A DNA stretch of 64,000 nucleotides from Octopus bimaculoides (lineage: Eukaryota): NCBI RefSeq assembly GCF_001194135.2, contig NC_069002.1:15300978-15364977 (forward strand). The letters are read 5' to 3'. The notes below the pieces were generated by a model. The model had not been told where the DNA came from, ran no database searches, and saw only the letters and a program-made list of their open reading frames with translations. Position 1 is the stretch's first letter. Each line of letters begins with the position of its first letter. Positions 353-64,000 of the stretch are shown in pieces. The translations under genes and the position numbers were made by a program.

Positions 353-461
353 CGCCATGCCAAAGAGAATGTATCTGGTCGCAGTCCTTCGCCTTTATAA
401 ACAGTGCCATCAGGAAGAGTTAAATCATTGCTTTTGTCATCATCAAAAGTTCCACATAAGC
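353..461 (-). CDS. Exon 27: VWD2 end, (G)[35 protein letters not shown](R); gene continues left of the window
   Basis: cttacag/gtaagt, 109 nt, phase 1->2; GLCG motif. Confidence 0.92.
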
Positions 462-3400: not shown

Positions 3401-4657
3401 TATTTTCTTAATATATGCTTAATACATGAAGTTAAATTAAATAAGCAGTAAGAAAAAATGTATTTATCACCTATTTAATGTGACAGTAATTAGAAATAAA
3501 CACAGACTCCTTGGATCTTCATGATTCAGAAAAGTATTATTTTTCAAACAACATAATTAAAATTGTTATATTAGTGTTTGGAATTTGTATAGTTTTCCTC
3601 TGAAAATTATTTCTTTTCTCATAATTCCATAAAAAATTAAAAACTATTGAACGTGAATACTTACTTCAAATCGTAGTGTTTTGTGTTTGTACAAAATGTA
3701 TTCTCCTAGATAGAAGTTGTTATAATATCTGAAGAAATGAAAATGTATACATTGAAAAGACATATTACACAAAGTAGCAGAAAACCATAAAGAGGGAGGT
3801 GTTGCTGTTATTTAATATATACATGTATAATTAACTCTTTCTGTTTCTGTAAGAGTCTAATGATTTTGATTGCAAACTTTTCCTGTCTAATTATAATATG
3901 TTTTGTTGTGTATGGGGGTGTAATGTATGTATGTGTTCATGTGTATCATTTGAGCAACAATAAATTTGTTTATGTCTCCTGTAGACAAAATATCCAGGAG
4001 TTCAGTGGTTTTGTGTGTTTTAATATTAGTAGAGTAACAGTCTTGTTTGTGAAACAAATTAAAATATGGCATCAAAAAAGGCATCCAGCTAGAGAATATT
4101 GTCTCAAACAGTCTTGTCCAACCTACACCAGCATAGAAAAAGTGGATATAAAACCAATCATAATGATGTTAGAAATCTGTTTCTGTCTGAATATAAAGTC
4201 TGAATATCAATCTTTTATTTTATTATATTAACAATTAAAGAACTGTATCCTTACCTTCCATCAAATGTTGTCATATGGGGGTCATTCAGTGACATGCACA
4301 CGGCTGGTCTGTCCAAATCAATCACAGAAAACTTAAAAATATAAAAAGAAAGTGTTAACATAAACATGTGTGGAGTTTGGGAGTTTAGCATAGTTTTTGC
4401 TTATAATAATGACACTAGCCAATTATTTTAAATAAAATCTAAACAAATAAAATCAGGCGTGGGTGTGTGGTTAAGAAATTTGCTTCCCACCCACGTGGGT
4501 CTGATTTCAGTCTCACTGTATGGCACTTTGGCCAATGGCCTTCTTTTATAGCCTTTCAACCCTTGAGGAATTTGAATACTGAACATAAAGATGGTCAAAA
4601 TGCTGTTAAGCATCTTGCCAGGTGTGCTAATGATTCTGCCAGTTCACCACTTTAATG

Positions 4658-4713
<56 letters not shown>

Positions 4714-4964: not shown

Positions 4965-5008
<44 letters not shown>

Positions 5009-5450: not shown

Positions 5451-5512
<62 letters not shown>

Positions 5513-8500
5513 CCCTTCTATTAAAGGCACAATGCCTGAAAGTTTGGGGGCAGAGTTAGTTGATTACATCAATCCCAGTGTTTTACAAGTATTTAATTTA
5601 TTGACTCCCTGCAAAGGACAAAAGGAATTTGAACTCAGAGCATAATGGCAGATAAAATACCACTAAACATTTCACCCAACATGCTAACGATTCTGCCAGC
5701 TTGCTGTCTTAATAATAATAATGATGATGATGATGATGATGATGACAACAATAATAATAATAATAAAGTGATTGTAATAGAAAATAAGAACTACAGTATA
5801 TTATGAGACTTTCCCTTAAAAGCTGACCATATTACTGAAGCAATAAGACTAGGTGTGATCATACAGGACAAAATAAACTGTGTAAGACCATAGATTTTGC
5901 AAATCCCTCTGAAGCAGAGTTGATACTAAAGAAACTGAAGAAATTGAGAAATACCAGGATCTAGCCAGAGAGCTGAGGAGAATATGTAGAGTAGGTGTAT
6001 ATACAGAGTAGGTGTATATATAGAGTAGCTCAAGTTAGTCTGGTATCAGGAAATATTGTGGCCATTGATTGCATAATACTTAGTTATGATATGTTTGCTT
6101 CAAGAATCTTGTTTAAATATTTATAACTTCAAACAAGACATCACTTGGCAAAGACTAGATAAAATGTTGAGTGAGATTAGGTTTCTATATTCAACAAGCT
6201 AATTAACAATTTCTCATTAAATTTAAGGCAAATATTTTTATTCATGATAAAGGTATAGTTTCAAAGGCAATGCGTAACGTAGCTAACTGCTAAATAATTC
6301 AGCATTTCTTGCAATACTACAAATAATTTACAGCAAGAGATGTAAATTTGACAATTGTTTCTTATTTCTTTATTGCCCACAAGGGGCTAAACATATAATG
6401 GACAAACAAGGACAAACAAAGGGATTAAATCGATTACATCGACCCCACTGCGTAACTGGTACTTAATTTATCGACCCCGAAAGGATGAAAGGCAAAGTCG
6501 ACCTTGGCGGAGTTTGAACTCAGAACGTAAAAACAGACGAAATACTGCTAAGCATTTCGCCTGGCGTGCTAACCATTCTGCCAGCTCGCTGCCTTGAGAA
6601 TTGTTTCTCTAACTTCCAGTCCGGAATTCAACTTCATTTAAAGGATATAAGATAAGATAGATTATTTGAAGTTGTTGGTTACTTAGTATTTAAGAATGCT
6701 TCTGAAAATAAGTCTTCAGTATTTCTACTTACAACTCAATTGGTGATTCCCCTAAAATCCTTGCTTACCAAAGATATGAAAAGAAATCAAATGTGATCAT
6801 TGTAAGCCTACCTGTTTGGTTACTTCCTTTAGATTTATACTTGATGAACTGCTCTGTTTATAGCTGAAGGTCATTTTGAAATATCCAGGTTTGTTCCCAT
6901 CAATCTTGTTATCAGCGACAGCTTTCAAGTTTAAAACATACACAGAATTCCAGTTGTTAGCTTGAATACTCATCTGGCAAGATGACCTTATAGAGGGAGA
7001 GTCTTTAACATGCCAAGCTAAAACAACTTGTGGTATCTCTACACCGCTTGGACACCTTAGAACAGAGCTGTTTACACCATAATCAAAATCAACTGTTACA
7101 GCCCAAAATTTCATGTCACCACTCAGAACATCAGCACCCAATATCTTTGGTGGCGCTGTGGCTTGGATCATAAAATAGACCCCATCATGACCTTCTTTAA
7201 GAACAATATCATCAGTGAGGTTTGTCACCTTAAAACAAAACAAAAGATCTTTAATTATCAAAACAGGGTTTCAAATATATTGGTTACTACATAATCAGTT
7301 CTTGTAATGGCTTTTCTACAAATGCTCTTCCATTATACATGCATGAAATAAAATTTTGGAATTAACTTTGAACAATCACAAAATTAATATCAGATTAATA
7401 AAATCAATGAAATAAAATATTTTAAAGAGGATTGTAAAATTTAAACACATGTCATTACAAGGAGGTGCTAAAAAGTTCCTGGCTTTAAATGTATCATGAA
7501 AAGGCCTGATTGGAGGCCCAATCTTCTGAGTTCTTTTACAGGACCATTGAAATAATTGTGTGAATCTGAGAGGAGAATATACTGAATGAGAAATGTCAGC
7601 TGCTTTTTTTTTGTTTGTTGTCTTTTTCTTTCCTTCTAATGGGACAGAGAACATCAAAAATGAAGAAAGAAATACAAATAATTCATTAAAGTGTTTTTAT
7701 TTACCTTGACTTCTGCTATGTATTTTTCACTCCAGCTTAAGGTACTACGGGAATCTTCACAATTCTCCTCATAACAGAGACTTACAGCACAGCGAACCTA
7801 TTAAAAAGTAAATAAAAAATAATTACAGTTATTATATTCTGTCACAAACGAAAGGATTTTAATGAAAAATTGCACAATGGAAAAGTAATTAGAATGTTGG
7901 TGATTTCAGTTATTGTGAGTTCTACAGCATCATTATAGGTGAAATCTCTTTATGTAAACCTTTTTTTTTATCAAAAAGAAGGTTCTGAATATTAGAAAAA
8001 GGCACCATCCATCATAGAAATGAGCAAATTTAGTAGACTTGAACATAATAGGAAAAGAGGAGATGATTCACTTGTTACATATGTAACAGATATGTGAAGA
8101 ATGGACTGTGAAGTTACAAAATTCACTTCATAACCATTTCTGGTTCCATTTCACTGCATGACACAAGGAACAAATGTTTGAGACAAACCTCCCTCCCTCC
8201 CTCCCTCCCTCTCTCTCTGTCTCTCTGTGACCGCATGCCANNNNNNNNNNNNNNNNNNNNNNNNNNNNNNNNNNNNNNNNNNNNNNNNNNNNNNNNNNNN
8301 NNNNNNNNNNNNNNNNNNNNNNNNNNNNNNNNNNNNNNNNNNNNNNNNNNNNNNNNNNNNNNNNNNNNNNNNNNNNNNNNNNNNNNNNNNNNNNNNNNNN
8401 NNNNNNNNNNNNNNNNNNNNNNNNNNNNNNNNNNNNNNNNNNNNNNNNNNNNNNNNNNNNNNNNNNNNNNNNNNNNNNNNNNNNNNNNNNNNNNNNNNNN

Positions 8501-9579
8501 NNNNNNNNNNNAGGATCACGGTTTCGATTCCCAGACCGGGAGTTGTGAGTGTTTATTGAGCAAAAACACCTAAAAGCTCCACGAGGCTCTGGCAGGGGAT
8601 GGTGGCGAACCCTGCTGTACTCTTTCACCACAACTTTCTCTCACTCTTTCTTCCTGTTTCTCTTGTACCTGTAATTCAAAGGGCCAGCCTTGTCACACTG
8701 TGTCATGCTGAATATCCCTGAGAACTACGTTAAGGGTACACGTGTCTGTGGAGTGCTCAGCCACTTGCACGTTAATTTCACGAGCAGGCTGTTCCGTTGA
8801 TCGGATCAACTGGAACCCTCGACGTCGTAAGCAACGGAGTGCCAACAACAACAACAATTGTCTGTCTTCTGTAAATATGTCATGCAGCTCAACCAACATC
8901 TTCACTTGGATAAAAAAAAATATCTAAAAACAAAGTAAAAGCTGGCAATACACAGATATTCAGTCGTAGAACACTGACTCAATAAGACTCATCCAATTAA
9001 TACCAGCATGGAAGATGCAGATGTGAAAATGGTGGTGGTGTTTAATAAGAGTATATTTGTAAGACAAGTATTTAGGGGACTGTGGTTTCAATACTCATGA
9101 ACTTCACTCCTTTCTAGATAACTTAAGAGTCATTTTGTTGTGGGGCAAATTTCACAAAATATCAAACATTACAGAAAGTTCTATAAGGAACAAATTGAAT
9201 AATTCAACTCAGTTTCACCAAGGTGAGTGGATCTTCTTGAGAACTGCACTTGTCAGTAATTCCAGTCCTTCGTTATCTCTTCAATGAGGCTGAAGGTCTT
9301 GAAATCATCCATCATCATCATGTCTCACATCTTCCTGGATCCCCTTGCACAAGTCCCATTCACATTTATACAGCTATCCTCATCCATGCACATGTCTATA
9401 CCAATGCAATTTTTTTCTTGCACACTACAGTTCATTCCTTTTATGCATAGATTTTCTTTCACTTTTGCAATATGTATTTCATCTATATTTACACTGCGCT
9501 TTCGATGGAGCATACTTCATTTCTTTCCAGTCTTCCCAAAAAATGAAATGAAGTGCTCTGTTTGAGGTTCATATAAGTG

Positions 9580-9614
<35 letters not shown>

Positions 9615-23200: not shown

Positions 23201-24184
23201 CTCATATTTTTTAAATTTCTTTATTACCCACCAGGGGCTAAACATAGAGGGGACAAACAAAAATAGACATCGACCCCAGTTCAAAACTGGTACTTATTTT
23301 ATTGACCCCGAAAGGATGAAAGGCAAAGTCAACCTCGGCGGAAAAGTAGTTCTCATATTTGTATGAAAAATAAAAATAATGCTGGATACTGACAAATATT
23401 GCTTTTCTTTTAACAATTATTTACTTTTAGTTTGAGTTAAGTGCATCTCATTAAGTATTAATAATAAATGTAAAGATAACCCAATTACTTTCTATAAAAT
23501 CAATGCCATCAGGTATTGAATTCTGAAATTGGTGCAAACAGCACAGTTTGGAGCAAAAAAGACAGTTGCTTAAATTACTTGCAGTTTTTAAGTGTTAACC
23601 TATTTTATCAAACCCCTTAAATATGAAACACAAAATTGACTTTAGAGATATTTGGTTTCAGAATCTTACAGGTATATAATTAAATATAGGAAGGTATTTT
23701 GATCAAATGTTAGATTGATTTCATAAATTCATCTGTCCTCAATGAACCAACTGATTGACAAACTAGTAAAATGACTTCATATATAAATTATAATGTAGGA
23801 AATAGTTACTTATCAAAACTGAGTTAAAAGCTCACCTGTAGTTGTGATATGTGGCATTCAGTTTGGTTTTCCAAAAATGGGCCACCATATACTGACACCC
23901 ATGTGCAAGAATTTCCTTCAAGATCATGACAAATGCCATTATTTTGAAGATATGTAATTTGTGGTGCCATTTCCAAGTTCACAGAACAGTCATCTCCAGC
24001 ATATGGTGCATTGCATTGACAGTTTCCTGTTGATAAGAGAAAAGAATTTCACATGTGAACTTATGGGATTGATTTTTATAACATGAATGAAAGAAAGCTT
24101 GGTTGATAGCTAACTAAAAAGACAAACAAATGGATGGATAGATGGATGGATGGATCTATCTATCTATCTATCTATCTATCTATA

Positions 24185-32009: not shown

Positions 32010-32887
32010 ATGTATTTCAGATAAGAAAGTAAATTTCAAGCACAGTAAAGCTGTTCGGACAGCAGAGAAAGGTTGGGTGTTTATCCTTGTAAGATGGAAA
32101 AAATTTGCAAGCAAGTAGCTACAGGACTCAAATCCATACCCTTTAGATACTGGTTGTGTACTTTACCAGCCCCAACTATTAATAATTTCCCAATCTATTA
32201 AACAGCAAATAGTCCAGACATGTTTTGTGCACAGAATTGGAATCGCTTGATGCTATATGAACGTGTCCTTTGTTTACAAACACTTCACAACATGACAAGG
32301 TATGGGAAGAAGTCCAGACATACTTTCATGCAGGATGCAAGCAAACTTTACTGTCAAGCTAATTGCATGTAATTATTCATGTATTTAATTAGAAGTGCGG
32401 TTATGAAACATTTAGATAAAGAACATTACCAGTTGTTTTGCAAGACTGAAACTGACTCGGTTTTGAAACACACATATGTGCATCAGTGCAGCTAGTACAG
32501 TATTTTGTTGATGAATTCCTGGAGTCAACTGCTTGGCAGACACCACTGTAGAGACTTTCGCTTTTCTTTACTCTGAAAATTAATACAAAACAGTAAATAA
32601 ATAAAGAAATTCCACTCATATCTTTTTTTTTTTAAATACCAAACAGGAAAATACAAGACAGGAAAATACATTCTTTTATTCTTTTACTCGTTTCAGTCAG
32701 TTGACTGCGGTCATGCTGGGGCACTGCCTTGAAAGGTTTTTGCAACCTCAGGACTTATTTCTTAAGCCTACTACTTATTCTGTCAATCACTTTTGCTGAA
32801 CCACTAAGTTACAGAGATGTACACACCAACATAGGTTGTCAGACGGTGATGGTGGGACAAATGCAGACACAAAGACAAACACAAATC

Positions 32888-54349: not shown

Positions 54350-54439
<90 letters not shown>

Positions 54440-57400
54440 CATATACACATACATGTTATGTGTGCGAAGGTGCATGGCTTAGTGATTAGGGCATTCAGTT
54501 CACAATCATAAGGTCATGAGTTCAATTCCCATTGATGTGTTGTGTCCTTGAGCAAGACACTTTATTTCATGTTACTCCAGTCTACTCATCTGGCAAAAAT
54601 GAGTTGTACCTGTATTTCAAAGGGCCATCCTTATCACATTCTTTGTCCCAATTAATTTCCCTGTAAACTACGTTAAGAGTGTGCATGTCTAGACTGCTTA
54701 GTCATTTGCACATTGATTTAACGAGCAGGCTGTTTTTTGATTAGCTCATTTGAAACACTTGTCATCAAAACCACTGGAGTGCCGTCTATTGTGTGTATAT
54801 CTATATATGTGAGTATGAAGCATGTACAAGTGTGTCTGTCTATATATGAATCTTATATATATATATATATAAGTGCATATATATGCACATATGTTTGTGT
54901 GAATGTATATTTGTATGTATGAATATACATATGCATGACTATGTATTTATTCATGAATAAACTTATGTATTTATTCATGTTTATTCCTACGTATTTATTC
55001 ATGCAATTGGTGGTATCTATATTTCTGTATCATGGGTGAACGATTACAAATTTGTAGCATGAATTGCTAAATTTGTAAATGGCATTGCACTTGACAGCAG
55101 TAATTTGACTTTTGCCTAAACCAATACATCATCACACTACACACACACTATTACCCCACACTATACTATGTTCTAACATCAATATTACACCATACTATAC
55201 CTTACTGGAGGTGCAATGGCCTAGTGGTTAGGGCAGCGGACTCGCAGTCATAGGATCTCGGTTTCGATTCCCAGATCGGGGATTGCGAGGGTTTATTGAG
55301 CGACAACACCTAAAGCTCCATGAGGCTCCGGCAGGGGATGGTGGCGAACCCTGCTGTACTCTTCCACCACAACTTTCTCTCACTCTTACTTCCTGTTTCT
55401 GTTGTGCCTGTAATTCAAAAGGTCAGCCTTGTCACACTGTGTCACGCTGAATATCCCCGAGAACTACGTAAAGGGTACATGTGTCTGTGGAGTGCTCAGC
55501 CACTTGCACGTTAATTTCACGAGCAGGCTGTTCCGTTGATCGGATCAACTGGAACCCTCGACGTCGTAAGCGACGGAGTGCCAACAACAACAATACCTTA
55601 CTATATTCTACTGTACTATATTATACCACATTCTACTATAGCACAATACATATTGAATGCATATGTATATATAAATATGTATTTATGTATGTATGTATGC
55701 ATATTTACCCATGTCTCTTGGTCTTTGTATCTGTACCACAAATATATTTTCATGCAAAAACTTTACTAAAATGAGATTTGCAAACTTAATATGGAATTAT
55801 AAAACATCTTGATGAAACTTGAAGTTTGGGTGATAGTGGTGAGTAATGTTAACATTGATCATGGTTACTTCCTGGTTCAATAGCTGCAATACAATCTGTT
55901 GTTGCCCACCAGAAACTCTGAAACTTACTCAACACCAGTTGTTCTTTATTAACAGGTCTACTGGTGATTCATTAGCCTAATATTAACCCTGATCTGATAA
56001 GATCAATGAAGTCCTACATTTAACAGATCATTTTCTTAGCGAGATCGTTGCCAGTGCCGCCGAACTGGCTCCTGTGCAGGTAGCACGTAAAATACACCAT
56101 TTTGAGCGTGGCTGTTGCCAGTACCGCTTGACTGGCCTTCGTGCTGGTGGCTCATAAAAGCACCCACTACACTCTCGGAGTGGTTGGCGTTAGGAAGGGC
56201 ATCCAGCTGTAGAAACTCTGCCAAATCAGATTGGAGCCTGGTGTAGCCATCTGGTTTCACCAGTCCTCAGTCAAATCGTCCAACCCATACTAGCATGGAA
56301 AGCGGACGTTAAATGACGATGATGATGATGATCAAACCAGGAATATATGATGAGTAGTTTCTTTGTTTTAAGACATTAAAATGTAACTTGACAGTGGTTT
56401 GGTTGCAATTTCTTGTAGGTCAAACAATAGCTCACTTGTAGTTCTGTTTATCAAACAACACAAACACTCAACCATCAAAATTAACACCAGCAACAAGGAA
56501 CACCTCTACATGGTTGCTTGAGCTGTTAGAAAAAGCAGACAAATCTTCCTCATATTGTAACTTAGAGTCCTTGAGCATTTGTATATCTTTTAAAACCTTG
56601 AGCATTTGTATATCTTTTAAAACTATGCCTCTTCAAGATACAAGCTGGGATAAGGTGTTTCTGGAAGATCATCAGTTGTCCATACACGTAGGTCTGTCTT
56701 CTTTATACAAACAACATTGTTCAGGAAAATGGCAAGGACTAACACAGCTTGACATTGTTGCGAGTAATGCCCATCAGAACACAAAGAGCTGGAATAGTTA
56801 CTGGAAGGCATTAACAACCGCCATCATGTCTAACATTCTAATAATTTCTCTAAGCACTACATTTGTATTTTATTGACCCCAAAAGAACAGAAAGAAAAGT
56901 TAACCATTGTGGAATTTGAACTCAGAGCACTGAAAGCTAAAACAAGTACTGCCAAGCCATTCTACAAAACACGCTAACAACTTGGCCGTTTGTCTGCTTT
57001 CTTAGAGATATCAATTAATCATGGCTGACTTGAATACATTTCATCATAGCTTTGCCTCATTCAGCACTCACCTCTGGCAAACAGCACCTTGTGCGTGTGT
57101 GTGTGTGTAAATATGAAAGTATGTAGGCAAAGTAGAGAGAGGTGTATGGGGTATAAAGGCGTGAGTAGTGTTGTTTTCTTTTCATCTTGTTATTTTCTTC
57201 TGTCATTCTTCTCTGGAATTTAAAGATTATGCTTCAGCAGGCGCAAAACCACTCACCTGAAATAATCGTCTGCATAAGTTGAATATCTGAAGGCGTGTGT
57301 TAGTGAATACATTAACTACTACTACTACTACACTTCAAATGATAATAATAATGATGATGGACTCTGCTGTTGAAGACGATGTGTAAGGGTTCAGCTCTTT

Positions 57401-58477
57401 TGATGAATGACGTGCACAAATGATTTGTTTTACAGTGATCAAAAGTATACGCTGTACATGAACACACTCCTTCCATCAAATCAATATTGTCTAAACAGGT
57501 ACACCCTGTATCACATATCAGGTGTCAAAATGACTGCAGAGTAACGTGAAAGGAAGTGCTTTGTTTAAGAACACTATGCACCAATCAGTCTGGTAAGTGA
57601 AACCATGATCTTGCAAATCATGAGTGCCACACCCTAACCACTAAGCCATGTTGTTGTTGTTGGCACTCCGTCGCTTACGACGTCGAGGGTTCCAGTTGAT
57701 CCAATCAACGGAAGAGCCTGCTCGTGAAATTAACGTGCAAGTGGCTGAGCACTCCACAGACATGTGTACCCTTAACGTAGTTCTCGGGGATATTCAGTGT
57801 GACAAGGCTGACCCTTTGAATTACAGGCACAACAGAAACAGGAAGTAAGAGTGAGAGAAAGTTGTGGTGAAAGAGTACAGCAGGGTTCGCCACCATCCCC
57901 TGCCAGAGCCTCGTGGAGCTTTAGGTGTTTTCGCTCAATAAACACACACAACGCCCGGTCTGGGAATCGAAACCGTGATCCTATGACCGCGAGTCCGCTG
58001 CCCTAACCACTGGGCCATTGCGCCTCCACAACCACTAAGCCATAATAATAATAGTAATCCTTTCTACTATACAAGGTCTGAAATTTTGTGGGCGGGGACT
58101 AGTCAATTACATTAACCCCAGTTTCACTGGTACTTAATTTATCGACCCTGAAAGTCGACTTTGGTAGAATTTGAACTCAGAACATAAAGATGGATGAAAT
58201 GCTGCAAAGCATTTTGCTTGGCATGTTAGTGATTCTGCCAGCTCACTGCCTTACATAATAATCTTTTCTACTATAGGCATAGGGCCTGAAATTTTGGGAG
58301 ATAGGGCTAGTCAATTACATTAATCCAGTGTTTCACTGGTACTTAATTTATTGACCCTGGAAGGATGAAAGGCAAAGTCAACCTCGGCAGAATTTGAACG
58401 CCAAACATAAAGACGGATGAAACGCCACTAAGCATTTTGCCAAGTATGCTAGTGATTCTGCCAGCTCATCACCTTAC

Positions 58478-58516
<39 letters not shown>

Positions 58517-61500
58517 GTAAAAATAATAATAATCCTTTCTACTATAGGCACAAGGCCTAAAATTTTGAAGGAGGAGATAGTTAATTACATTGACCTCAGT
58601 ATTTGACTGGTACTTAATTTATCAATTCTGAAAGGTTGAAAGGCAAAGTTGACCTCAGCGGAATTTGAATACAGGATGTAAAGACATATGAAATATTGCA
58701 AAATGGTTCGCCCAGTGTGCTAATAATTCTGCAACCTTGCTGCCTTAATAATAATAATAATAATAAAAATAAAAATAATAATAATAATAATAATAATAAT
58801 AATTCCGTTTATATATTTGTTTTGCAAGATTTTTGATGTGAAATCGTGTGTTGAAACAGATGTTGTTGTACTTGAGGATGGTCATATTGCCAGTTTAGCC
58901 AATAAAAACACATGCACTGTAGGGTTAATGTAATGTAATGTAATATAAAGCTGAAGCAAATTAACACCAAATATACAGTGCGTGTGTTTTTATTGGCTAA
59001 ACTGGCAATATGACCATCCCCAAGTACAACAACAACAACAATAATAATAATAATAGTAATAATACTTTCTACGATAGGCACAAAGCCAGAAGCTTTGTAA
59101 GGAAGGGACTCATCAATTATGTCAGCCCCAGTGCTCAACTAGTATTTATTTCATCAAACCTGAAAGGACAAAAGGTAAAGTCAACTTCAGAAGAATTTGA
59201 ACTCAGAACATTCAGACGAATAAAGAGCCACTAACCATTCTGTTGGGTGTGTTAAGGAATCTACCATCTTGTCATAATAATATCGTGATTACAAGGCCTG
59301 AAATTTTAGGGACAACGGGGTAATCAATAATAATGATGATGATGATGATGATTTCTTTTATTGGCCCTAGGGGCATAGATGAGGGGAGACTTCATAAGGA
59401 CAGCTAACAATCTGTGTAGGGATTTATATAAAAGATGAGGAGAAAGAAATAGGAAAGACAATGAAATAAGATAAAAATATATGTAGTATACCAACTATGT
59501 GGACATATATATGATGTAGTCCTTCTGATATAGAAGAAACTCCAACTAGGTTCAGTTAAGGAACCCTGCAGATCCAATATTATCTTGACCATCAAAGTAT
59601 GAGCACCCTCCCAACTGTTGCTCTCCAATCTATAGGCACATGCTTTAAGTAGGGCTTTTCATTCTAACCCTTTTTGTCACAGTCACCCATCTTTTCACAG
59701 ATTCACTGAGAAATAACACTTCCCTCTCCACAGCCACTTTCCAGATAAGGAAATTGAAGACCACAAATTCAGTCATGTTAGATGTTGATAGAGTTATAAA
59801 AGTACTTGAGAAAGAACAAACCTACAAATATCCAGGAATGAATGAAGGCCCTGGCATTCACCATGCAAGCATGAAAGAAAAGATCAGGAATTTGATCTTT
59901 TACAGTAGAATTTGGGCAGTCCTGATATCAGAGATAAATGCACATAACAAGGTATTAGCTATAAATTCCTTAGCAGTTCCTGTTGTTCTTTATAGCTTCA
60001 ATATATTGAACTAGAATATCAGTGACATAAAGAAAATTTGAAGCTGCTGACTTGCCATAAGATGGATCACCGAAAGACAGACACAGATCGTCTTTACCTT
60101 CCCAGAGCTCAAAGAAGTCAAGACTTGATCCAGTTTGAAATCGCTTACAAAAACACCACAATTGGACGAGCCAAATATCTTGAAACAGTTAACAACTGGA
60201 TGCCAAAACATGTTGAAAGTCATGAGAGGTGTAAAAAGCTTCCTTCTGTCACGAAGGAGAGGAACAAATTTTCTATTGAGTTCTTGCTTGATACCCAGGC
60301 TGAAACAACCTGAGGGAGTGCAGCAACTATTTTTCCAAAGAAGGTGAAATCAATGGCATGGAAAAAAGCACATGAACGATTGGCAGAGAAGTGGGAGCAG
60401 AAATCTCTGCATGGCAAACAAGCTGATGTTGACCAGAAGCACACTCATCAGTTGCTACAGAGCTCAGAGCTAAAGGCAAAGAGTGGAGGCTTCATCTTAG
60501 TTGCTGAAGATCAAAGCTTATTGACCTGGAACTACCAAACCAGCATGAAGAAAACTGGTGTAGACCCAAAGTGCTGATTTTACTCAAATGTGATTGAAAC
60601 AGTGGACCATCTAATCTCTGGGCCATATCCCCAACATATTCTAGGCCATATCTCCAACAATTCACCTTCTTTGTCCTTGTCACCTCTGGAGACATAGGTG
60701 TATTGTTCATCATCCTTAAACAAACCTTATTTGGGGATCTTTTGCAATGGGATGGGCTACTTGACCTGAATAAAATTCTAATGGCCCCACCTGCAAGGTC
60801 ATGTGCTGTATATCTTGATATGAAATCAACATGTTGCACACATGGTTGTGATGCATGTGCCTGATGTACCCTTATCAGATGGGTAGTAAGTACCTGTCTG
60901 GTACTTTATTTTATCGATCCAGAAAGGATTAAAGGCCTTAACATGAATCTCTGGGCAAGCTATAATGTTTTGTCCTGGGACTCACCTCGAGGGTGCACAG
61001 TTACTTATAGCCAAAGCAGTTGTAAGCCAATAAAGTGTGATTATGTCACTATTGTACTTTTGTCTTTCATTTGTTAATATATTTTATTAGTTGATACACA
61101 CATCTCTTGCCTTCTCGCATCGTCAGTCTTACAAAGTATAATATTTGACCTGCTGTCATCCTCCTTATCATCACCAACACCACCAACACCACCACAACAA
61201 TAACAACAACAACAACAACAGAAACAGCAACAACAACAACAACAACAACAGCATCAGCAGCTGCTTTTTATATTTGTAGGAAAACTTGTATTTCACCTAG
61301 TATAAACTTACCAAAAACTGCTACTGATGTTTTTGCTGATGGTGATAACGATCCAGACACATTAAGATCATCAGTGAAATAATGTCTGACTACTAGACCT
61401 GAACATTCAGAGTGTTTCATTAGAATTTCTTTGTTAGGGTTGGCTATTCATATCATTACAGGGATTGCTGTAACATTACAAGAATGTCAACTTACTAAAA

Positions 61501-64000
61501 ATCTTCCTGCACACACACACACCAAATGCAAGACATGCTTCATAAAGGACACCTCTAAATGATCGGCTGATCTGCTAGAAATAGTAGCCTCTAAATTTCT
61601 TAAAAACTGCACCTTATATTCTTGAGATATGAAAGCACCCACTGAACAAAGTAATCCAAGATAGCACTTAAAATGTGGGATAGATATGGCTAGAATTTGT
61701 TCTATCATTGAGTTGCTTAATCAAGGTGGAGGTGCAATGGCCCAGTGGTTAGGGCAGCGGACTCGTGGTCATAGGATCGCGGTTTCGATTCCCAGACTGG
61801 GCGTTGTGAGTGTTTATTGAGCGAAAACACCTAGAGCTCCACGAGGCTCTGTCAGGGGATGGTGGCGAACCCTGCTGTACTCTTTCACCACAACTTTCTC
61901 TCACTCTTTCTTCCTTTTTCTGTTGTGCCTGTAATTCAAAGGGTCAGCCTTGTCACATTGTGTCATGCTGAATATCTCCGAGAACTACGTTAAGGCTACA
62001 CGTGTCTGTGGAGTGCTCAGCCACTTGCACGTTAACTTCACAAGCAGGCTGTTCCATTGATCAGATCAACTGGAACCCTCGATGTCGTAAGCGACGGAGT
62101 GCCAACAACAAGGCTTAATCAAGGTCAGTGTGGAACAAAATAACAGTTACAACATTATACATAGTTGAGGTTGTTTAACACATTTTTCTCAACAGGAACT
62201 GTATGTCCCCACACCTCACACCTACACAGGGCCCTTCTCATATCTGAAGGGAGCTTGTTTGTATTGTATTGGAGAGATAAATGAAAGACATTTACAACTG
62301 TTTTATATGGTTTTCCTGAGACGCTGAGAGAAGTTTTTAAAGAAGCCATGACCAAAAATGGTTGAAAAGCGTTGGTTTATATCTTCACACTCAAAGAATT
62401 TGTTTTCTTTGTGTAAAAAGATTTCGATTGTCTTCGATTTCCATAGTTATGGCTGTTTAAAGCGGAACACATGAACACAGGAATGTCATGTTAGGCAGAA
62501 CAATACGCTCTTTTTACTCTCTTTTACTTGTTTCAGTCATTTGACTGTGGCCATGCTGGAGCACCGCCTTTAGTCGAGCAAATCAACCCCAGAACCTATT
62601 CTTTGTAAGCCTAGTACTTATTCTATCAGTCTCTTTTGCCGAACCGCTAAGTTACGGGGACGTAAACACATCAGCATCGGTTGTCAAGCGAAGTTGGGGG
62701 GAGAAACACAGACACACAAACACACACATACATATATATACATATACATATATACAACAGGCTTCTTTCATTTTCCGTCTACCAAATCCACTCACAAGGC
62801 TTTGGTCGGCCCGAGACTATAGTAGAAGACACTTGCCCAAGGTGCCACGCAGTGGGACTGAACCCGGAACCATGTGGTTCGTAAGCAAGCTACTTACCAC
62901 ACAGCCATTCCTATGCCTATTTTGTAATTTATTTTTATTCTTTTACTCTTTTACTTGTTTCAGACACCTGACTAAGGCCATGCTGGAGCACCACCTTAAA
63001 GGGTTTTAGTGAAAGAAATCAACCCAGGACTTATTCATTGTAAGCTTAGTACTTATTCTGTTAGTCTCTTTTGCCGAACAGCTAAGTTACAGGAAAGTAA
63101 TGACACCTACATTCATTATCAACCGAAGGTGGGTGGGCAAAAACAGGCACAAAGACACACACACACATGTATGTATACACACACACACATATATATATAT
63201 ATATATCATCATCATCATCATTGTTTAACGTCCACTTTCCATGCTAGCATGGGTTGGATGATTTGACTGAGGACTGGTAAAACCAGATGGCTACACCAGG
63301 CTCCAATCTGATTTGGCAGAGTTTCTACAGCTGGATGCCCTTCCTAATGCCAACCACTCCGAGAGCGTAGTGGGTGCTTTCACGTGCCACCAGCACGTGA
63401 AGCAAAGTCAACCTCAATGGAATTTGAACTCAGAAAGTGAAGATGGAAAAAATGCTGCTAAGCATTTTTCCCTGTGTGCTAATGATTCTGCCAGTCTGCC
63501 ACCTTAATAATAATAATGATGATGATGATGATGATGATGATTTTATGCATGTGTGTGTCTGTTTGTGCATCGTTGTCTGTATGCTTCCACTTGCTTGAAG
63601 CTGGTTTCATTTCAAGTATGCTCCATTATGTTCGTTATCATTGTGGAGTGGTTCGACAATAGATTTTTATAAAACACAAGCAAGACAACAATAAGTCCTT
63701 GAAGCCAGTGGTCTTCGAGGACTTTGATCTATCATGATTATAACCCAGTGATTAAAATCAAGAAAGAAAAAAATGAATAAATAAAATACATTTTTCTAAA
63801 TTTGCAGCTCCAACAAATCCCCTAAAATTTTATTTTAAAAATAAAATAAAAGGAAACAATCAAAAATTTTCTTAATAAGAAGAGGAGAATGTGGAGTAAA
63901 CTGAAACTTACTGTGTCTTTCCATTTTCGGAACTGTCCTGGTTTTGAATCTGCTGTTTCAACTTCAACCATAAACTGCTTTGCATAACTCTGTCCTTGGT
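353..64000 (-). CDS. Multi-exon gene, partial at both ends: VWD/EGF-domain (VWDE-like) mosaic protein with F5/8C, two VWD modules and two PAN/Apple domains; 27 exons in window
   Basis: All 27 exons have AG/GT boundaries and join in one open frame (2+4395+2 nt). Recognisable motifs: CxSxxDPHxxTFDG, GLCGxxD, CPNDCSxNGNC, two PAN Cys patterns, discoidin ARRIRI. Confidence 0.88.
928..1112 (-). mobile_element. Family C repeat (RTE-type 3' end or SINE with (GAT)n tail), diverged
   Basis: (CAT)n followed by the ttccatgctgg...cttcctaa.gccaaccactcc core. Confidence 0.7.
1131..1496 (-). mobile_element. Tandem decayed copies of an RTE LINE 3' segment
   Basis: gtcttctcaagc...ggcccaa.att..aagatcat occurs twice and is the reverse complement of 16380-16490. 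Confidence 0.55.
1819..2045 (-). mobile_element. Family C repeat
   Basis: (CAT)n plus gatgcccttcctaacaccaaccact core. Confidence 0.75.
2305..2416 (-). CDS. Exon 26: VWD2, [37 protein letters not shown](G)
   Basis: gttgcag/gtaagt, 112 nt, phase 0->1. Confidence 0.9.
2727..2939 (-). CDS. Exon 25: VWD2, [32 protein letters not shown]...DEGRKFV
   Basis: cttacag/gtaagt, 213 nt, phase 0->0. Confidence 0.92.
3665..3728 (-). CDS. Exon 24: VWD2, [21 protein letters not shown]
   Basis: cttcag/gtaagt, 64 nt, phase 2->0. Confidence 0.9.
4255..4331 (-). CDS. Exon 23: start of VWD2, [25 protein letters not shown](R)
   Basis: ttttaag/gtaagg, 77 nt, phase 0->2; DPHxxTFDG. Confidence 0.92.
4562..5712 (-). 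mobile_element. Head-to-tail array of family D tRNA-derived SINEs (4 near-full copies, 1 partial) linked by (AAT)n
   Basis: Repeated ctggtacttaatttatcgacccc.aaaggatgaaaggcaaagt.gacctc.gc.gaatttgaactcagaac at about 250-bp period. Confidence 0.85.
4654..4762. repeat. (AAT)n directly followed by (ATT)n, a self-complementary microsatellite
   Basis: Read directly. Confidence 0.95.
5765..5990 (+). mobile_element. R4/Dong-like non-LTR retrotransposon fragment (restriction-like endonuclease region), decayed
   Basis: Translates with stops and frameshifts to [21 protein letters not shown]...[13 protein letters not shown], matching the ILWDF..RPD..EKYQDL consensus. Confidence 0.7.
6360..6595 (-). mobile_element. 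Family D SINE, variant tail (ttattgcccacaaggggctaaacata)
   Basis: Full family D core and tRNA-like head. Confidence 0.85.
6812..7228 (-). CDS. Exon 22: module 2 pre-VWD region ([13 protein letters not shown]...[21 protein letters not shown]...EVTKQ)
   Basis: ttttaag/gtaggc, 417 nt, phase 0->0; lies in ORF 6797-7261. Confidence 0.88.
7456..7590 (+). mobile_element. Partial mariner-type MITE (left TIR only)
   Basis: TA-caaggaggtgctaaaaagttcctggcttt matches the TIR of 37350-37566. Confidence 0.6.
7705..7797 (-). CDS. Exon 21: [31 protein letters not shown]
   Basis: tttaatag/gtaaat, 93 nt, phase 0->0. Confidence 0.85.
8241..8511. other. Assembly gap (N run)
   Basis: Run of N. Confidence 1.
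8512..8858 (+). mobile_element. Family A tRNA-derived SINE with (CAA)n tail; head lies in the gap
   Basis: Near-identical to the other family A copies. Confidence 0.9.
10290..10510 (-). mobile_element. Diverged partial family B SINE with internal microsatellites
   Basis: ctaccgaattccattc.taag...gaagacactttgccaa resembles the family B 5' half. Confidence 0.55.
10800..10970 (-). mobile_element. Family D SINE
   Basis: Family D core and head. Confidence 0.8.
11310..11551 (-). CDS. Exon 20: module 2 lead region ([32 protein letters not shown]...LKYGSK)
   Basis: catcttag/gtaagt, 242 nt, phase 1->0. Confidence 0.85.
12230..12302 (+). mobile_element. Family A SINE 3' fragment
   Basis: gcaggctgttccgttgat.ggatcaactggaaccctc...gccaacaacaac. 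Confidence 0.75.
12635..12874 (-). CDS. Exon 19: PAN/Apple domain 2 ([13 protein letters not shown]...[26 protein letters not shown]...[10 protein letters not shown])
   Basis: tattttacag/gtaagt, 240 nt, phase 1->1; PAN Cys pattern. Confidence 0.87.
13522..13924 (-). mobile_element. Family B tRNA-derived SINE with internal (TA/TG)n and (AAAAGAGT)-type tail
   Basis: Reverse complement of 14702-15120. Confidence 0.9.
14702..15120 (+). mobile_element. Family B SINE
   Basis: aggcgtaggagtggctgtgtggtaag...gggttcagtccc A/B-box-like head; full body. Confidence 0.9.
15187..15438 (-). CDS. Exon 18: PAN/Apple domain 1 ([60 protein letters not shown]...LYCRE)
   Basis: tttctttcag/gtaatt, 252 nt, phase 1->1; PAN Cys pattern C..C-x3-C-x7-C.S.EY..C.L..C. 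Absent from the ORF track because no start codon opens it in frame. Confidence 0.87.
15547..15878 (-). mobile_element. Family A SINE, head truncated
   Basis: Reverse complement of the family A consensus. Confidence 0.9.
15880..16730 (+). mobile_element. Decayed RTE-clade LINE 3' portion running into the family C sequence and a (GAT)n tail
   Basis: Remnant peptides PSGRWPC...[37 protein letters not shown]; then taggaagggcatccagctgtag core and gatgatgat. Confidence 0.72.
16757..16900 (-). mobile_element. Family C repeat, young copy
   Basis: catcatcgtttaacgtccgctttccatgctagcatgggttggacg. Confidence 0.85.
16882..17114. repeat. Minisatellite: 12 copies of GATGCCCTTCCTAAYGCCA(A), 19-20 bp
   Basis: Twelve gcccttccta units counted. 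Confidence 0.95.
17641..17967 (-). mobile_element. Family A SINE, 3' end missing
   Basis: Reverse complement of family A head and body. Confidence 0.88.
18335..18510 (+). mobile_element. Family D SINE with internal deletions
   Basis: aaagtggcgagctggcagaa head; agtagaaaagatt tail. Confidence 0.75.
19047..19383 (+). mobile_element. Family E tRNA-derived SINE
   Basis: catggttcagtggttagagtgttggactcacaat head; ctggtcttccataaacaacctt body. Confidence 0.85.
19614..19728 (-). CDS. Exon 17: small Cys module [38 protein letters not shown]
   Basis: tttgcag/gtatat, 115 nt, phase 0->1; C.I.G.CY...CNP....W pattern. Confidence 0.85.
20100..20240 (+). mobile_element. Family B SINE fragment ending in (TG)n at a gap
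   Basis: gaccaaagccttgtgagtggatttg.tagac...ctgaaagaa. Confidence 0.7.
20241..20553. other. Assembly gap (N run)
   Basis: Run of N. Confidence 1.
20946..21158 (-). CDS. Exon 16: LKPGG...[26 protein letters not shown]...[21 protein letters not shown]
   Basis: attacag/gtaatt, 213 nt, phase 0->0; lies in ORF 20835-21158. Confidence 0.87.
21375..21835 (-). mobile_element. Penelope-like element reverse transcriptase fragment (Naiad/Chlamys-like), decayed
   Basis: [37 protein letters not shown] and [35 protein letters not shown] match the QWxNTxxVIxWF / FDIxxFYPSI / FDVxMGSxDGAEICELVG pattern. Confidence 0.78.
22700..22990 (+). mobile_element. CR1/Jockey-group LINE ORF2 C-terminal fragment, decayed
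   Basis: [11 protein letters not shown]...[17 protein letters not shown]...FFLTRIST resembles LxHRRxVASLSLFYRYYxGxCSxEL...FFPRTxxLWN. Confidence 0.55.
23215..23345 (-). mobile_element. Partial family D SINE
   Basis: Variant tail and core; no head. Confidence 0.7.
23836..24026 (-). CDS. Exon 15: (G)[33 protein letters not shown]...VSVYGGPFL...ECHISQLQ (EGF end, TIG-like start)
   Basis: caacag/gtgagc, 191 nt, phase 1->0; CxC..Y.G.DCS completes the EGF. Confidence 0.88.
24872..25040 (-). CDS. Exon 14: [19 protein letters not shown]...[15 protein letters not shown](G), start of EGF-like domain
   Basis: tttttcag/gtttgt, 169 nt, phase 0->1; CPNDCSxNGxC. Confidence 0.87.
25156..25593 (+). mobile_element. 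Family B SINE
   Basis: Full-length match to 14702-15120. Confidence 0.9.
25690..26095 (+). mobile_element. Decayed RTE LINE 3' fragment
   Basis: Remnants resembling LERxEASML.W and [17 protein letters not shown]. Confidence 0.55.
26220..26450. mobile_element. Diverged copy of a TTAA-flanked piggyBac-type non-autonomous element
   Basis: TTAA at both ends; shares ttcaaactggccagatctgg and aagcatta with 44530-44757. Confidence 0.55.
27184..27525 (+). mobile_element. Family E SINE
   Basis: Full-length match to the other family E copies. Confidence 0.85.
27630..27785 (-). CDS. Exon 13: C8-like region, [24 protein letters not shown]...PC...IESCITNIQ
   Basis: attttag/gtatac, 156 nt, phase 0->0; W..S..A..FC pattern typical after VWD in VWDE-like proteins. 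Confidence 0.83.
28060..28726. repeat. (CATA/CATG)n compound microsatellite, present twice around a 44-N gap (28379-28422)
   Basis: 28075-28378 is repeated at 28423-28726. Confidence 0.9.
28755..28985 (-). mobile_element. Family D SINE, variant tail
   Basis: Full core and head. Confidence 0.85.
29634..29743 (-). CDS. Exon 12: (G)[36 protein letters not shown]
   Basis: cattacag/gtaagt, 110 nt, phase 1->0; supplies the phase bridge between exons 11 and 13. Confidence 0.8.
29900..31330 (-). pseudogene. 5'-truncated RTE-clade LINE; reverse transcriptase pseudogene
   Basis: [36 protein letters not shown]; HQGSVL..F; [12 protein letters not shown]; [14 protein letters not shown]; [18 protein letters not shown]. 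Broken across several frames. Confidence 0.92.
31423..31706. other. Assembly gap (N run)
   Basis: Run of N. Confidence 1.
31707..31920 (-). mobile_element. Family C 5' portion with ~60-bp internal subrepeats
   Basis: tttt(a)cgtgccacc.gcac...gg.actggcaac..c..gctc.aatg unit repeated about 3 times. Confidence 0.65.
32430..32572 (-). CDS. Exon 11: (R)[47 protein letters not shown]
   Basis: ttttcag/gtaatg, 143 nt, phase 2->1, Cys-rich. Confidence 0.83.
32671..33115 (-). mobile_element. Family B SINE with long (CA)n
   Basis: Reverse complement of the family B consensus. Confidence 0.85.
33485..33668 (-). mobile_element. Family C repeat
   Basis: (CAT)n plus the conserved body. Confidence 0.85.
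34154..34262 (-). CDS. Exon 10: VWD1 end, (G)[35 protein letters not shown](R)
   Basis: tacag/gtaaga, 109 nt, phase 1->2; GLCG..D..ND..F..SW is the VWD C-terminal signature. Confidence 0.9.
34385..34555 (-). mobile_element. Family C repeat, diverged
   Basis: (CAT)n plus a degenerate body. Confidence 0.6.
34579..34848 (+). mobile_element. Possible hAT-type non-autonomous element; only the left end is seen
   Basis: Starts CAGGGGTTTTCAAACTTTTT after tcctagat; aataaagtacttgttctgggaatgattcctctc recurs inverted near 51925-51965. No right TIR found. Confidence 0.4.
34849..35025. repeat. (CT)n microsatellite with TAGC interruptions
   Basis: Read directly. Confidence 0.95.
35547..35933 (+). mobile_element. 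Family A SINE with 10-bp TSD (ggtgttgtta)
   Basis: TSD at 35537-35546 and 35934-35943. Confidence 0.92.
36225..36540 (-). mobile_element. Family C-related repeat with duplicated core, diverged
   Basis: cagctggatg..cttcc.aa..ccaacca occurs twice. Confidence 0.6.
36707..36809 (-). CDS. Exon 9: VWD1, [34 protein letters not shown](G)
   Basis: ccttcag acceptor, gtcaga donor, 103 nt, phase 0->1; paralogous to 2305-2416. Confidence 0.85.
36896..37290 (+). mobile_element. Family A SINE
   Basis: ggaggcgcaatggccc...gtttcgattccc head; (CAA)n tail. Confidence 0.92.
37350..37566. mobile_element. Mariner-type MITE with ~30-bp TIRs and TA ends
   Basis: tacaaggggtgctgaaaagttcctggcttt ... aaagccaggaacttttcagcaccccctcata. 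Confidence 0.85.
37652..37879. repeat. Long imperfect palindrome (foldback or MITE-like)
   Basis: Arms are reverse-complementary over about 100 bp; left arm carries a short extra segment; TA at both ends. Confidence 0.88.
37930..38210 (+). mobile_element. tRNA-derived SINE related to family E, different 3' body
   Basis: catggctcagtggttaag...tttgattcccagacc head. Confidence 0.7.
38465..38800 (+). mobile_element. Family E SINE
   Basis: Full-length match. Confidence 0.85.
38870..39274 (+). mobile_element. Family B SINE
   Basis: Full-length match. Confidence 0.9.
39518..39772 (-). mobile_element. Family B SINE 3' half
   Basis: Reverse complement of about 39040-39274. Confidence 0.88.
39998..40201 (-). 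CDS. Exon 8: VWD1, [32 protein letters not shown]...NGQYK
   Basis: cctag/gtaatg, 204 nt, phase 0->0; CxC-xAI..DD motif shared with 2727-2939. Confidence 0.9.
40338..40526. other. Assembly gap within (TA)n/(TG)n
   Basis: Run of N. Confidence 1.
41150..41492 (-). mobile_element. Family E SINE
   Basis: Reverse complement of the family E consensus. Confidence 0.85.
42000..42530 (-). mobile_element. Penelope-like element RT thumb fragment (Naiad/Chlamys-like), decayed
   Basis: [77 protein letters not shown]. Confidence 0.8.
42784..42847 (-). CDS. Exon 7: VWD1, [21 protein letters not shown]
   Basis: ttctag/gtaagt, 64 nt, phase 2->0; paralogous to 3665-3728. Confidence 0.88.
42974..43549 (+). 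mobile_element. RTE (BovB-like) LINE 3' fragment with three C2H2 zinc fingers and a (TATG)n tail
   Basis: [36 protein letters not shown], then a frameshift to three CxxC-x12-HxxxH fingers; ends ggagtagacaaccacc(atgt)n. Confidence 0.85.
43783..43859 (-). CDS. Exon 6: start of VWD1, [25 protein letters not shown](R)
   Basis: ctttgcag/gtaaat, 77 nt, phase 0->2; TFDG motif. Confidence 0.88.
44125..44508 (-). CDS. Exon 5: module 1 pre-VWD region ([12 protein letters not shown]...[20 protein letters not shown]...SAFTN)
   Basis: ttgcag/gtaagt, 384 nt, phase 0->0; lies in ORF 44098-44514; paralogous to 6812-7228. Confidence 0.88.
44530..44757. mobile_element. piggyBac-type non-autonomous element, TTAA-CCC...GGG-TTAA
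   Basis: ttaacccatt at 44530 and aaagggttaa ending 44757; second copy at 26220-26450. Confidence 0.7.
45490..45795 (+). mobile_element. Family E SINE
   Basis: Body match with small deletions. Confidence 0.8.
45909..46001 (-). CDS. Exon 4: [31 protein letters not shown]
   Basis: cttccag/gtaatc, 93 nt, phase 0->0; same size and Cys spacing as 7705-7797. Confidence 0.85.
46473..46696 (-). CDS. Exon 3: module 1 lead region ([11 protein letters not shown]...LHCKPN...NIFSNY)
   Basis: tttttag acceptor, gtatga donor, 224 nt, phase 1->0; the other two frames are closed; paralogous to 11310-11551. Confidence 0.8.
46775..47100 (-). mobile_element. Family C repeat with ~60-bp subrepeats
   Basis: (CAT)n, core and repeated gtgctttttacatgccaccagc units. 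Confidence 0.8.
47281..47451 (+). mobile_element. Family C repeat, sense orientation
   Basis: ggttggcattaggaagggcatccagctgtagaaactctgcc...gatgatga. Confidence 0.85.
48600..49080 (-). mobile_element. Highly decayed R4/Dong-like retroelement fragment
   Basis: Fragments resembling LLYxDD and ENxVxxxWDFxIxTD..NxPDxVLID; many stops. Confidence 0.35.
49985..50312 (+). mobile_element. Family E SINE
   Basis: Full-length match. Confidence 0.83.
50563..50698 (-). CDS. Exon 2: discoidin C-terminus, [45 protein letters not shown]
   Basis: ttctag acceptor, gtaagg donor, 136 nt, phase 0->1; ARRIRI and CFRFNL match FA58C C-terminal strands. Confidence 0.82.
51571..51826 (+). mobile_element. Family C repeat, sense orientation, young
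   Basis: ggcacgtaaaagcacccactacactctcggagtggttggc...aaacgatgatgatgatg. Confidence 0.88.
52150..52370 (+). mobile_element. RTE LINE RT C-terminal fragment
   Basis: [39 protein letters not shown] (one frameshift). Confidence 0.7.
52913..53081. repeat. (TATG)n compound microsatellite
   Basis: Read directly. Confidence 0.95.
53084..54339 (+). mobile_element. Complete but inactive Tc1/mariner DD37D (maT-type) transposon, 1256 bp, TA TSD
   Basis: TIRs c.gg.tgca.a.ggtatttgaggaca at both ends; [14 protein letters not shown]-(37 aa)[13 protein letters not shown]; stops and frameshifts in the transposase. Confidence 0.92.
54340..54436. repeat. (TATG)n/(TG)n/(TA)n microsatellite
   Basis: Read directly. 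Confidence 0.95.
54465..54790 (+). mobile_element. Older SINE with an E-like head and an A-like 3' half
   Basis: gcatggcttagtg.ttaggg head; ctacgttaag...acgagcaggctgtt body. Confidence 0.65.
55207..55592 (+). mobile_element. Family A SINE with 10-bp TSD (ataccttact)
   Basis: TSD at 55197-55206 and 55593-55602. Confidence 0.92.
56040..56331 (+). mobile_element. Family C repeat, sense orientation
   Basis: Subrepeats, core and (GAT)n tail. Confidence 0.87.
57650..58029 (-). mobile_element. Family A SINE with 14-bp TSD (aaccactaagccat), nested in an older SINE head
   Basis: TSD at 57636-57649 and 58030-58043. Confidence 0.93.
58044..58802 (-). mobile_element. Second head-to-tail array of family D SINEs (3 copies) with (AAT)n linkers
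   Basis: Core repeated near 58130, 58345 and 58615. Confidence 0.85.
58861..59034. repeat. Inverted repeat: 61-bp arms with 2 differences, 52-nt spacer
   Basis: 58861-58921 is the reverse complement of 58974-59034; the right arm recurs at 28325-28378 and 28673-28748. Confidence 0.9.
59752..60625 (+). pseudogene. R4/Dong-like (RLE clade) non-LTR retrotransposon fragment: RT C-terminus to Zn knuckle
   Basis: [77 protein letters not shown]. Confidence 0.87.
61728..62112 (+). mobile_element. Family A SINE with 13-bp TSD (gcttaatcaaggt)
   Basis: TSD at 61715-61727 and 62113-62125. Confidence 0.93.
62507..62918 (-). mobile_element. Family B SINE
   Basis: Full-length reverse-complement match. 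Confidence 0.9.
62935..63204 (-). mobile_element. Family B SINE 3' half, older
   Basis: Body match up to the internal (CA/TA)n. Confidence 0.75.
63205..63395 (-). mobile_element. Family C repeat
   Basis: (CAT)n plus core. Confidence 0.85.
63400..63510 (-). mobile_element. Family D SINE head fragment
   Basis: aaagtcaacctc..tggaatttgaactcaga...gattctgccag. Confidence 0.7.
63912..64000 (-). CDS. Exon 1 in window (5' cut off): F5/8C discoidin-like, [29 protein letters not shown]
   Basis: GTAAGT donor at 63911, phase 0; resembles the TQG..yvksfkv..W..Y segment of FA58C; joins exon 2 in frame. Confidence 0.7.

Follow-up and report, generated by a model that had tools for sequence, protein, structure and literature searches.

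The 64,000-nucleotide stretch of Octopus bimaculoides DNA analysed here (the window) in all likelihood carries 27 consecutive internal exons of one intact gene, which would encode part of a very large extracellular mosaic protein acting as a ligand-binding scaffold. Read from 5' to 3', the predicted order is a discoidin-like part, a VWDE-like module, two PAN domains and the start of a second, paralogous module, module 1 consisting of an Ig_VWDE-like domain, a second pre-VWD domain, a VWD domain, a Cys-rich linker, a teneurin-type EGF and a Cys-rich post-EGF region. The same succession of a discoidin-like region, a VWD/EGF module, tandem PAN domains and a second VWD module had been proposed in a preliminary description of the window, and it is recovered here when the locus is rebuilt as one gene. 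Judging by sequence comparison, the layout is already predicted in a scallop and in a snail, and the octopus gene is a further member of an uncharacterised family.

The window, AT-rich and eukaryotic, is interrupted by five runs of N; VWD-, EGF- and PAN-like sequence occurs in Cys-rich open segments, all of them on the minus strand. The gene was built independently of the exon list of the preliminary description: a codon-usage model was trained on the obvious segments, open exons bounded by AG...GT were chained by dynamic programming on bootstrapped codon-usage and splice-site scores, the small exons of module 1 were located by tblastn with the well-resolved module 2, and the boundaries were curated by eye. 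The resulting chain runs along the minus strand from 64000 to 353 and comprises 27 exons (4399 nt in total), every one of them with AG/GT flanks, which splice into a stop-free frame of 1465 codons open at both ends; the earlier claim of 27 exons in one open-ended frame of about 1465 aa is thereby reproduced, with identical numbers and coordinates. At the 5' edge exon 1 runs past the window at 64000; at the 3' edge the donor of exon 27, which ends at 353, is GTAAGT, and the gene must therefore extend past the window.

The leave-one-out codon score is above zero in 26 of the 27 exons, and a Pecten maximus protein aligns with aa 150-1465 in a single BLASTP HSP (612 bits, E=0, 29.5% identity). On the strength of this scallop HSP and of the Pfam VWD match (E 5.9e-32), the predicted chain is far beyond chance; its weakest element is exon 1 (63912-64000). 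About ten exons of the first dynamic-programming chain were spurious (e.g., 59862-59921, 41997-42075, 30857-30938, and 21460-21605) and were ruled out by alignment with the paralogous module and with homologues. A rough concatenation of exons (841 aa) found no relatives when used as a protein query, a failure due to the fact that the most conserved exons, those of the VWD start, were missing from it; the full spliced model found no match among PDB sequences, and an Rfam search of the window returned nothing.

Module 1 measures about 785 aa and spans exons 3-17, all exons described here being on the minus strand. Its Ig_VWDE-like domain would begin in exon 3 (46473-46696, aa 75-149), a paralogue of exon 20, and end in exon 4 (45909-46001, aa 150-180), which carries an RC..CY..NC motif, aligns to the scallop protein and is met by tblastn with module 2 at E 0.15. 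The pre-VWD domain of exon 5 (44125-44508, aa 181-308), probably a beta-sandwich, is followed by a VWD domain distributed over five exons: exon 6 (43783-43859, aa 309-333), where the domain starts and the DPH motif is lost; exon 7 (42784-42847, aa 334-355), found by tblastn with module 2 at E 0.002; exon 8 (39998-40201, aa 356-423), found in the same way at E 2e-10 and covered by Pfam VWD; exon 9 (36707-36809, aa 424-457), identified by module 2 tblastn and Pfam VWD; and exon 10 (34154-34262, aa 458-493), also within the Pfam VWD match, which closes the domain (TEGLCG...SQSWR). The conserved Cys-rich linker starts in exon 11 (32430-32572, aa 494-541), which is aligned to the scallop protein and carries invariant Cys, and continues in exon 12 (29634-29743, aa 542-578), which aligns to the scallop segment 'GADITADV...EFGYDP', is the best candidate of the phase required between exons 11 and 13 and has a codon score in the top 1.2%. 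Exon 13 (27630-27785, aa 579-630; W-P...FCQ...C...ESC.TNIQ), placed by the scallop and family alignments, extends the linker, and exon 14 (24872-25040, aa 631-686) encodes its end together with the first half of the teneurin-type EGF; the whole Cys-rich stretch after VWD 1 (about 180 aa) is conserved in the family and contains Cys that are invariant in family alignment A3. Exon 15 (23836-24026, aa 687-750) holds the second half of the EGF followed by the beginning of a conserved post-EGF domain, which continues in exon 16 (20946-21158, aa 751-821), aligned to all homologues; the module is completed by its Cys-rich end in exon 17 (19614-19728, aa 822-859), aligned to the scallop protein and ending in phase 1. 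The conserved post-EGF domain of exon 16 has no Pfam match; by eye, the post-EGF region resembles an IPT/TIG domain followed by a PSI-like one, for which Pfam likewise gives no match.

The window holds the first 440 aa of module 2, encoded by exons 20-27: the Ig_VWDE-like domain in exon 20 (11310-11551, aa 1024-1104) and, at its scallop-aligned end, exon 21 (7705-7797, aa 1105-1135); the pre-VWD domain in exon 22 (6812-7228, aa 1136-1274); and VWD 2 in exon 23 (4255-4331, aa 1275-1299), where the domain starts with the family motif, in exons 24 (3665-3728, aa 1300-1321), 25 (2727-2939, aa 1322-1392) and 26 (2305-2416, aa 1393-1429), and in exon 27 (353-461, aa 1430-1465), where it ends (TEGLCG...SLAW) ahead of the donor mentioned above. 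Pfam VWD (PF00094) is accordingly found twice, the value quoted above being that of the overall match, and covers HMM positions 3-155 of 156 in module 1 and 1-156 of 156 in module 2. Over about 420 aa (exons 3-10 versus 20-27) the two modules share 32% identity, and the exon pairs 4/21 (93 nt, phase 0-0), 6/23 (77 nt), 7/24 (64 nt) and 10/27 (109 nt) have identical lengths and phases; such identity, combined with common exon lengths and phases, points to an old internal duplication. The pre-VWD domains of exons 5 and 22 are 24% identical, and an AlphaFold model of exon 22 computed with 2 sequences reached a pLDDT of 36.

The modules had been described as VWDE-type, and this assignment is supported through the homologues: exon 20 aligns to segments of P0153 and P0083 which match Pfam Ig_VWDE (35.6 and 33.4 bits; cut-off 28.1), Ig_VWDE matches being found in homologous segments of both scallop and Pomacea, and the nemertean homologue is named 'VWDE-like' by NCBI. 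A direct scan of the octopus pre-VWD regions with Pfam Ig_VWDE (PF25776) gave no call. Downstream of VWD 1, EGF_Teneurin is matched at 24.8 bits against a cut-off of 24.3, and a family profile searched against the PDB finds the EGFs of teneurin and reelin (E about 1e-6), as well as FCGBP and the VWF propeptide. One recognisable EGF per module is present in the window, and it is the VWD module itself that is repeated.

The tandem PAN domains lie between the modules, each in a single exon with six Cys. Exon 18 (15187-15438, aa 860-943), encoding PAN/apple domain 1, scores 33.1 bits with Pfam PAN_1 against a cut-off of 21.4 (E 5e-8), and exon 19 (12635-12874, aa 944-1023), encoding PAN/apple domain 2, scores 20.7 bits (E 3.8e-4), slightly below the same cut-off. 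The scallop segment aligned to exon 19 reaches 34.7 bits with PAN_1; the AlphaFold model of exon 19 has a pLDDT of 85, and its top Foldseek matches are without exception PAN/apple domains (TMq 0.63-0.80), among them the HGF N domain, a plasminogen PAN domain, the apple domains of FXI and prekallikrein, and the Sarcocystis lectin SML-2. In an alignment of four PAN domains, five Cys columns are invariant and the sixth is nearly so. The score of exon 18, taken together with the model, the Foldseek matches and the scallop segment for exon 19, indicates that both PAN domains are real, and the tandem PAN arrangement of the preliminary description stands, the first domain on its Pfam score and the second on structure prediction and on the scallop protein.

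The region upstream of module 1 had been called a discoidin domain; what holds of this assignment is that exon 2 (50563-50698, aa 30-74), which would encode the C-terminal strands of a discoidin-like (F5/8C-like) domain and ends in phase 1, matches residues 81-122 of the Bulinus protein P0152 by BLASTP (E 1e-8; 'ARRIRI..V..F...PC.R'). The N-terminal domain of P0152 is itself near threshold as an F5/8C domain (F5_F8_type_C 27.1 bits against a cut-off of 28.2, E 5e-6; precomputed PF00754). A tblastn search of the whole window with the Bulinus discoidin domain regains exon 2 (E 1.4e-4), a single HSP with P0152 (query 28-309) crosses the junction between exons 2 and 3, and the Bulinus discoidin-like domain directly precedes a module, as exon 2 does in the octopus gene. 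Octopus reads 'TAS' where the Bulinus domain has its C-terminal Cys ('KGC'). On the fragment of exons 1-2 (74 or 81 aa), F5_F8_type_C gives no match at E<=10, about half of the domain being in the window and weak matches being dropped by the HMMER filters. Exon 1 (aa 1-29) is in phase with exon 2 and would tentatively fall in the middle of the domain; its GTAAGT donor is strong, and its leave-one-out codon score of 9.3 ranks within the top 0.5% for open windows in introns. Compared with the Bulinus discoidin domain it shows no significant similarity (p=0.86), and tblastn with that domain found no alternative exon 1 in the window. The best PDB match of the exon 1-2 peptide, ATP synthase gamma (E 0.04, about 26% identity), was judged to be due to chance. 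It is plausible, on the similarity to the Bulinus protein, that exons 1-2 encode the C-terminal part of a discoidin-like domain.

The cassette boundaries (exons 2/3, 17/18, 18/19, and 19/20) are all phase-1 introns, each PAN domain being a symmetric 1-1 exon, and this organization, the classical one for exon shuffling, is consistent with exchange of cassettes by that route; phase-1 symmetric cassettes would also explain why different cassettes are found in the relatives discussed below.

The five assembly gaps are all intronic (introns 7, 11, 12, 16, and 20) and are flanked by phase-compatible exons. The scallop alignment runs without insertion across junctions 355/356, 541/542, 821/822 and 1104/1105; at junction 578/579 the scallop protein carries 14 extra residues, which in a by-eye comparison appear to be absent from the Bradybaena (P0084) and Argonauta (P0081) proteins. 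The extent of the VWD match in module 1 shows in addition that nothing is missing at the gap of intron 7. By phase, by the scallop alignment and by the comparison at 578/579, no coding sequence appears to be lost in the gaps. The gap of 44 N at 28379-28422 lies in a microsatellite-like, (ACAT)n-like array, and its flanks (28075-28374 and 28423-28722) are 100% identical over 300 nt; it probably represents overlapping contig ends left unmerged and, being intronic, leaves the gene unaffected.

The introns contain further recognisable elements. In intron 6, a frame on the opposite strand (43136-43483, plus) codes for three zinc fingers of the C2H2 type (Pfam zf-C2H2, E 1.5e-15) and may be transposon-derived or a nested ZNF exon. 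In intron 11, adjacent to the gap at 31423-31706, the minus strand carries two long frames (about 30057-30953) that on inspection by eye resemble the C-terminal part of a LINE reverse transcriptase and have no Pfam match at E<=0.01; pieces of these frames had been wrongly chained as exons by the first automatic pass. A short repeat, probably a SINE or MITE family, is dispersed through the introns in at least six copies and both orientations: 8574-8708 (plus), 15677-15835 (minus), 17728-17886 (minus), 55232-55447 (plus), 57775-58002 (minus), and 61810-61968 (plus). The window opens with an (ATA)n microsatellite (about 104 copies, positions 1-313), which belongs to the intron following exon 27, and a 19-nt tandem repeat of 12 copies lies at 16882-17113 in intron 17.

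Relatives were sought first by searching 1.84 billion representatives with a profile built from exons 22 and 5, and afterwards with the full model and with a family profile. The exon 22/5 profile has full-length matches in Pecten maximus, Bradybaena similaris, Argonauta hians and Bulinus truncatus; the full model adds relatives in Bulinus, Pomacea, Crassostrea and Ostrea, and the family profile adds the Lineus longissimus protein that bears the NCBI name given above and a Mytilus protein. Most of the top matches to the exon 22/5 profile are giant intronless metagenome proteins (P0001-P0049 and others) with 10-35 tandem copies of a segment of about 45 aa ('NW...v.v.A.vD..iDGn'), which matches profile positions of about 80-130 only, that is, the C-terminal third of the pre-VWD profile; one of these proteins matches the bacterial Ig domain Big_7. 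Such bacterial Ig-repeat proteins were rejected as orthologues, the partial profile match being taken as similarity at the level of the fold. PF26129 is precomputed for all eight named homologues (P0152-P0159).

The closest correspondence in domain order is with Pecten maximus LOC117339037 (XP_033756293.1), which is colinear with aa 150-1465 (module, EGF, PAN, PAN, module), and with Bulinus truncatus Btru_047518 (discoidin, module, module, PAN, PAN, module), annotated with F5_F8_type_C, PAN_1, Ig_VWDE and VWD. Identity to the octopus protein is 25-37% across the relatives, and the searched collections yielded no orthologue exceeding about 37%; with identities of only 25-36%, the Pecten and Bulinus proteins are paralogues or distant orthologues. 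The cassette in front of the module is a C-type lectin (Lectin_C) in oysters and D8C in Lineus; the Argonauta cassette matches Laminin_G_3 only at E 0.1, so that a ConA-like cassette in the family is possible, and the Pomacea cassette has no match. That each VWD module is preceded by a different cassette, as had been noted for the octopus gene, is true of the gene itself and also across the family. The preliminary description gave no characterised precedent for repeated VWDE-type modules separated by tandem PAN domains: the layout turns out to be predicted already in Pecten maximus and Bulinus truncatus and is not unique, and what remains is that none of these proteins has been characterised, no experimental work on family members having been found in the literature searched.

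A motif scan shows that C-x-S-[ILV]-N-D-P-H is conserved at the VWD start across the modules of the homologues, with GDPH in place of NDPH in a few of them; in octopus the motif is kept in module 2 (exon 23, CMSLNDPH) and lost in module 1 (exon 6, CMSLNQAQ). In mucins and FCGBP, GDPH is a site of autocatalytic cleavage and cross-linking, and we take the NDPH of the octopus family to occupy the same position. Cleavage or cross-linking at NDPH is conceivable by analogy, NDPH not being GDPH.

The main rival to a single gene is that the chain merges tandem single-module genes (one with the discoidin-like part and module 1, another with PAN-PAN and module 2), the real transcripts being shorter. Oysters would offer a precedent, their proteins P0154-P0156 being single-module, each with a signal peptide of its own and a single TM following the module; moreover, the homologues are all computational predictions, mostly fragments, and the multi-module ones are uncurated and devoid of clear N- and C-termini, so that the colinearity could partly reflect a shared merging of gene models. 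Merging is nevertheless disfavoured and, in our judgement, unlikely: from exon 17 to exon 20 no stop, TM-like segment or start exon is found between the modules, the PAN exons open in phase 1 with acceptor sites, phases agree at all junctions, and the order module-PAN-PAN-module recurs in one scallop and one snail model. The continuity of the frame also bears on whether the single gene is a decaying or unexpressed duplicate of a family member, as could be argued from the absence in module 1 of the otherwise conserved NDPH and from the lack of a closer orthologue in the searched collections; with 27 exons, zero stops in 1465 codons, canonical splice sites throughout and the invariant Cys of the family retained, a pseudogene is very improbable indeed.

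A different question is whether the intact gene encodes a classical gel-forming polymer of the mucin/VWF/hemocytin type, assembled into disulfide multimers through VWD-C8(-TIL) units, as two VWD domains, a Cys-rich region after VWD 1 and the resemblance of the VWD profile to FCGBP and the VWF propeptide might suggest. A C8 domain had indeed been placed after the VWD in the preliminary description; this part of it is not supported, since Pfam finds neither C8 nor TIL in the spliced model at E<=10 and, when the family profile is aligned to FCGBP and the VWF propeptide, the match ends inside the VWD region. VWF and mucins rely on the CGLC motif to form disulfide multimers; a motif scan of the octopus protein finds no CGLC, only TEGLCG, and no Ser/Thr/Pro-rich mucin region is present in the 1465 aa. 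The absence of C8, TIL and CGLC weakens the earlier suggestion of a polymer-forming protein; VWF/mucin-type disulfide multimerisation is not supported by the sequence, and a classical polymer of this kind seems decidedly unlikely.

In the scaffold reading that we prefer, the PAN and discoidin-like cassettes would bind glycans or other surface or protein ligands, and the VWD modules would provide a rigid disulfide-rich scaffold, possibly self-associating; across the family, in molluscs and a nemertean, the module is reiterated with varied ligand-binding cassettes (discoidin, PAN-PAN, C-type lectin, D8C) in front of it. Candidate roles are adhesion, mucus or matrix formation, immune recognition, and signalling in wounding or regeneration as for vertebrate VWDE. 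Given that the oyster relatives carry a TM, the protein cannot safely be called secreted, and both a secreted and a membrane-anchored form are possible. A more general proposal, namely that these genes constitute a lophotrochozoan family of giant proteins in which a reiterated VWDE-like module and shuffled phase-1 cassettes of lectin type serve polyvalent recognition or adhesion, with the VWD cleaving itself or cross-linking at NDPH, is put forward only tentatively and may well prove wrong. The octopus locus alone opens no long-standing question; its value is that the family is large and conserved in molluscs as well as in at least one nemertean, that the locus gives a clean, gap-checked exon map, and that the PAN pair consists of defined single-exon domains suited to expression.

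Among the known systems, Pecten LOC117339037 and Bulinus Btru_047518 share with the octopus gene the reiterated module and the tandem PAN domains between modules, the number of modules being different. Crassostrea gigas LOC105328884, Ostrea edulis LOC130050218 and the Lineus protein have a single module, from the pre-VWD to the post-EGF region, which is about 29-36% identical to octopus; they differ from it in the C-type lectin or D8C cassette and, in the oysters, in the signal peptide and TM. VWF, the gel-forming mucins, FCGBP, hemocytin and Sfp1 are VWD-C8-TIL assemblies, and hemocytin and Sfp1 also carry discoidin domains; the octopus protein shares the VWD fold with all of them, but C8, TIL, CGLC and a mucin region are not detectable in it. 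The named family nearest to the octopus gene is vertebrate VWDE, in which a single VWD precedes teneurin-like EGF repeats; it is needed for limb regeneration in the axolotl, its mechanism being otherwise unstudied (PMC7390686, PMC9117669). The likeness to it lies in a VWD followed by a teneurin-type EGF, without C8-TIL, and in the Ig_VWDE matches of the homologues upstream of the VWD; unlike vertebrate VWDE, as far as published descriptions allow the comparison, the octopus protein has the module itself repeated, a single EGF in each, and PAN and discoidin-like cassettes interposed.
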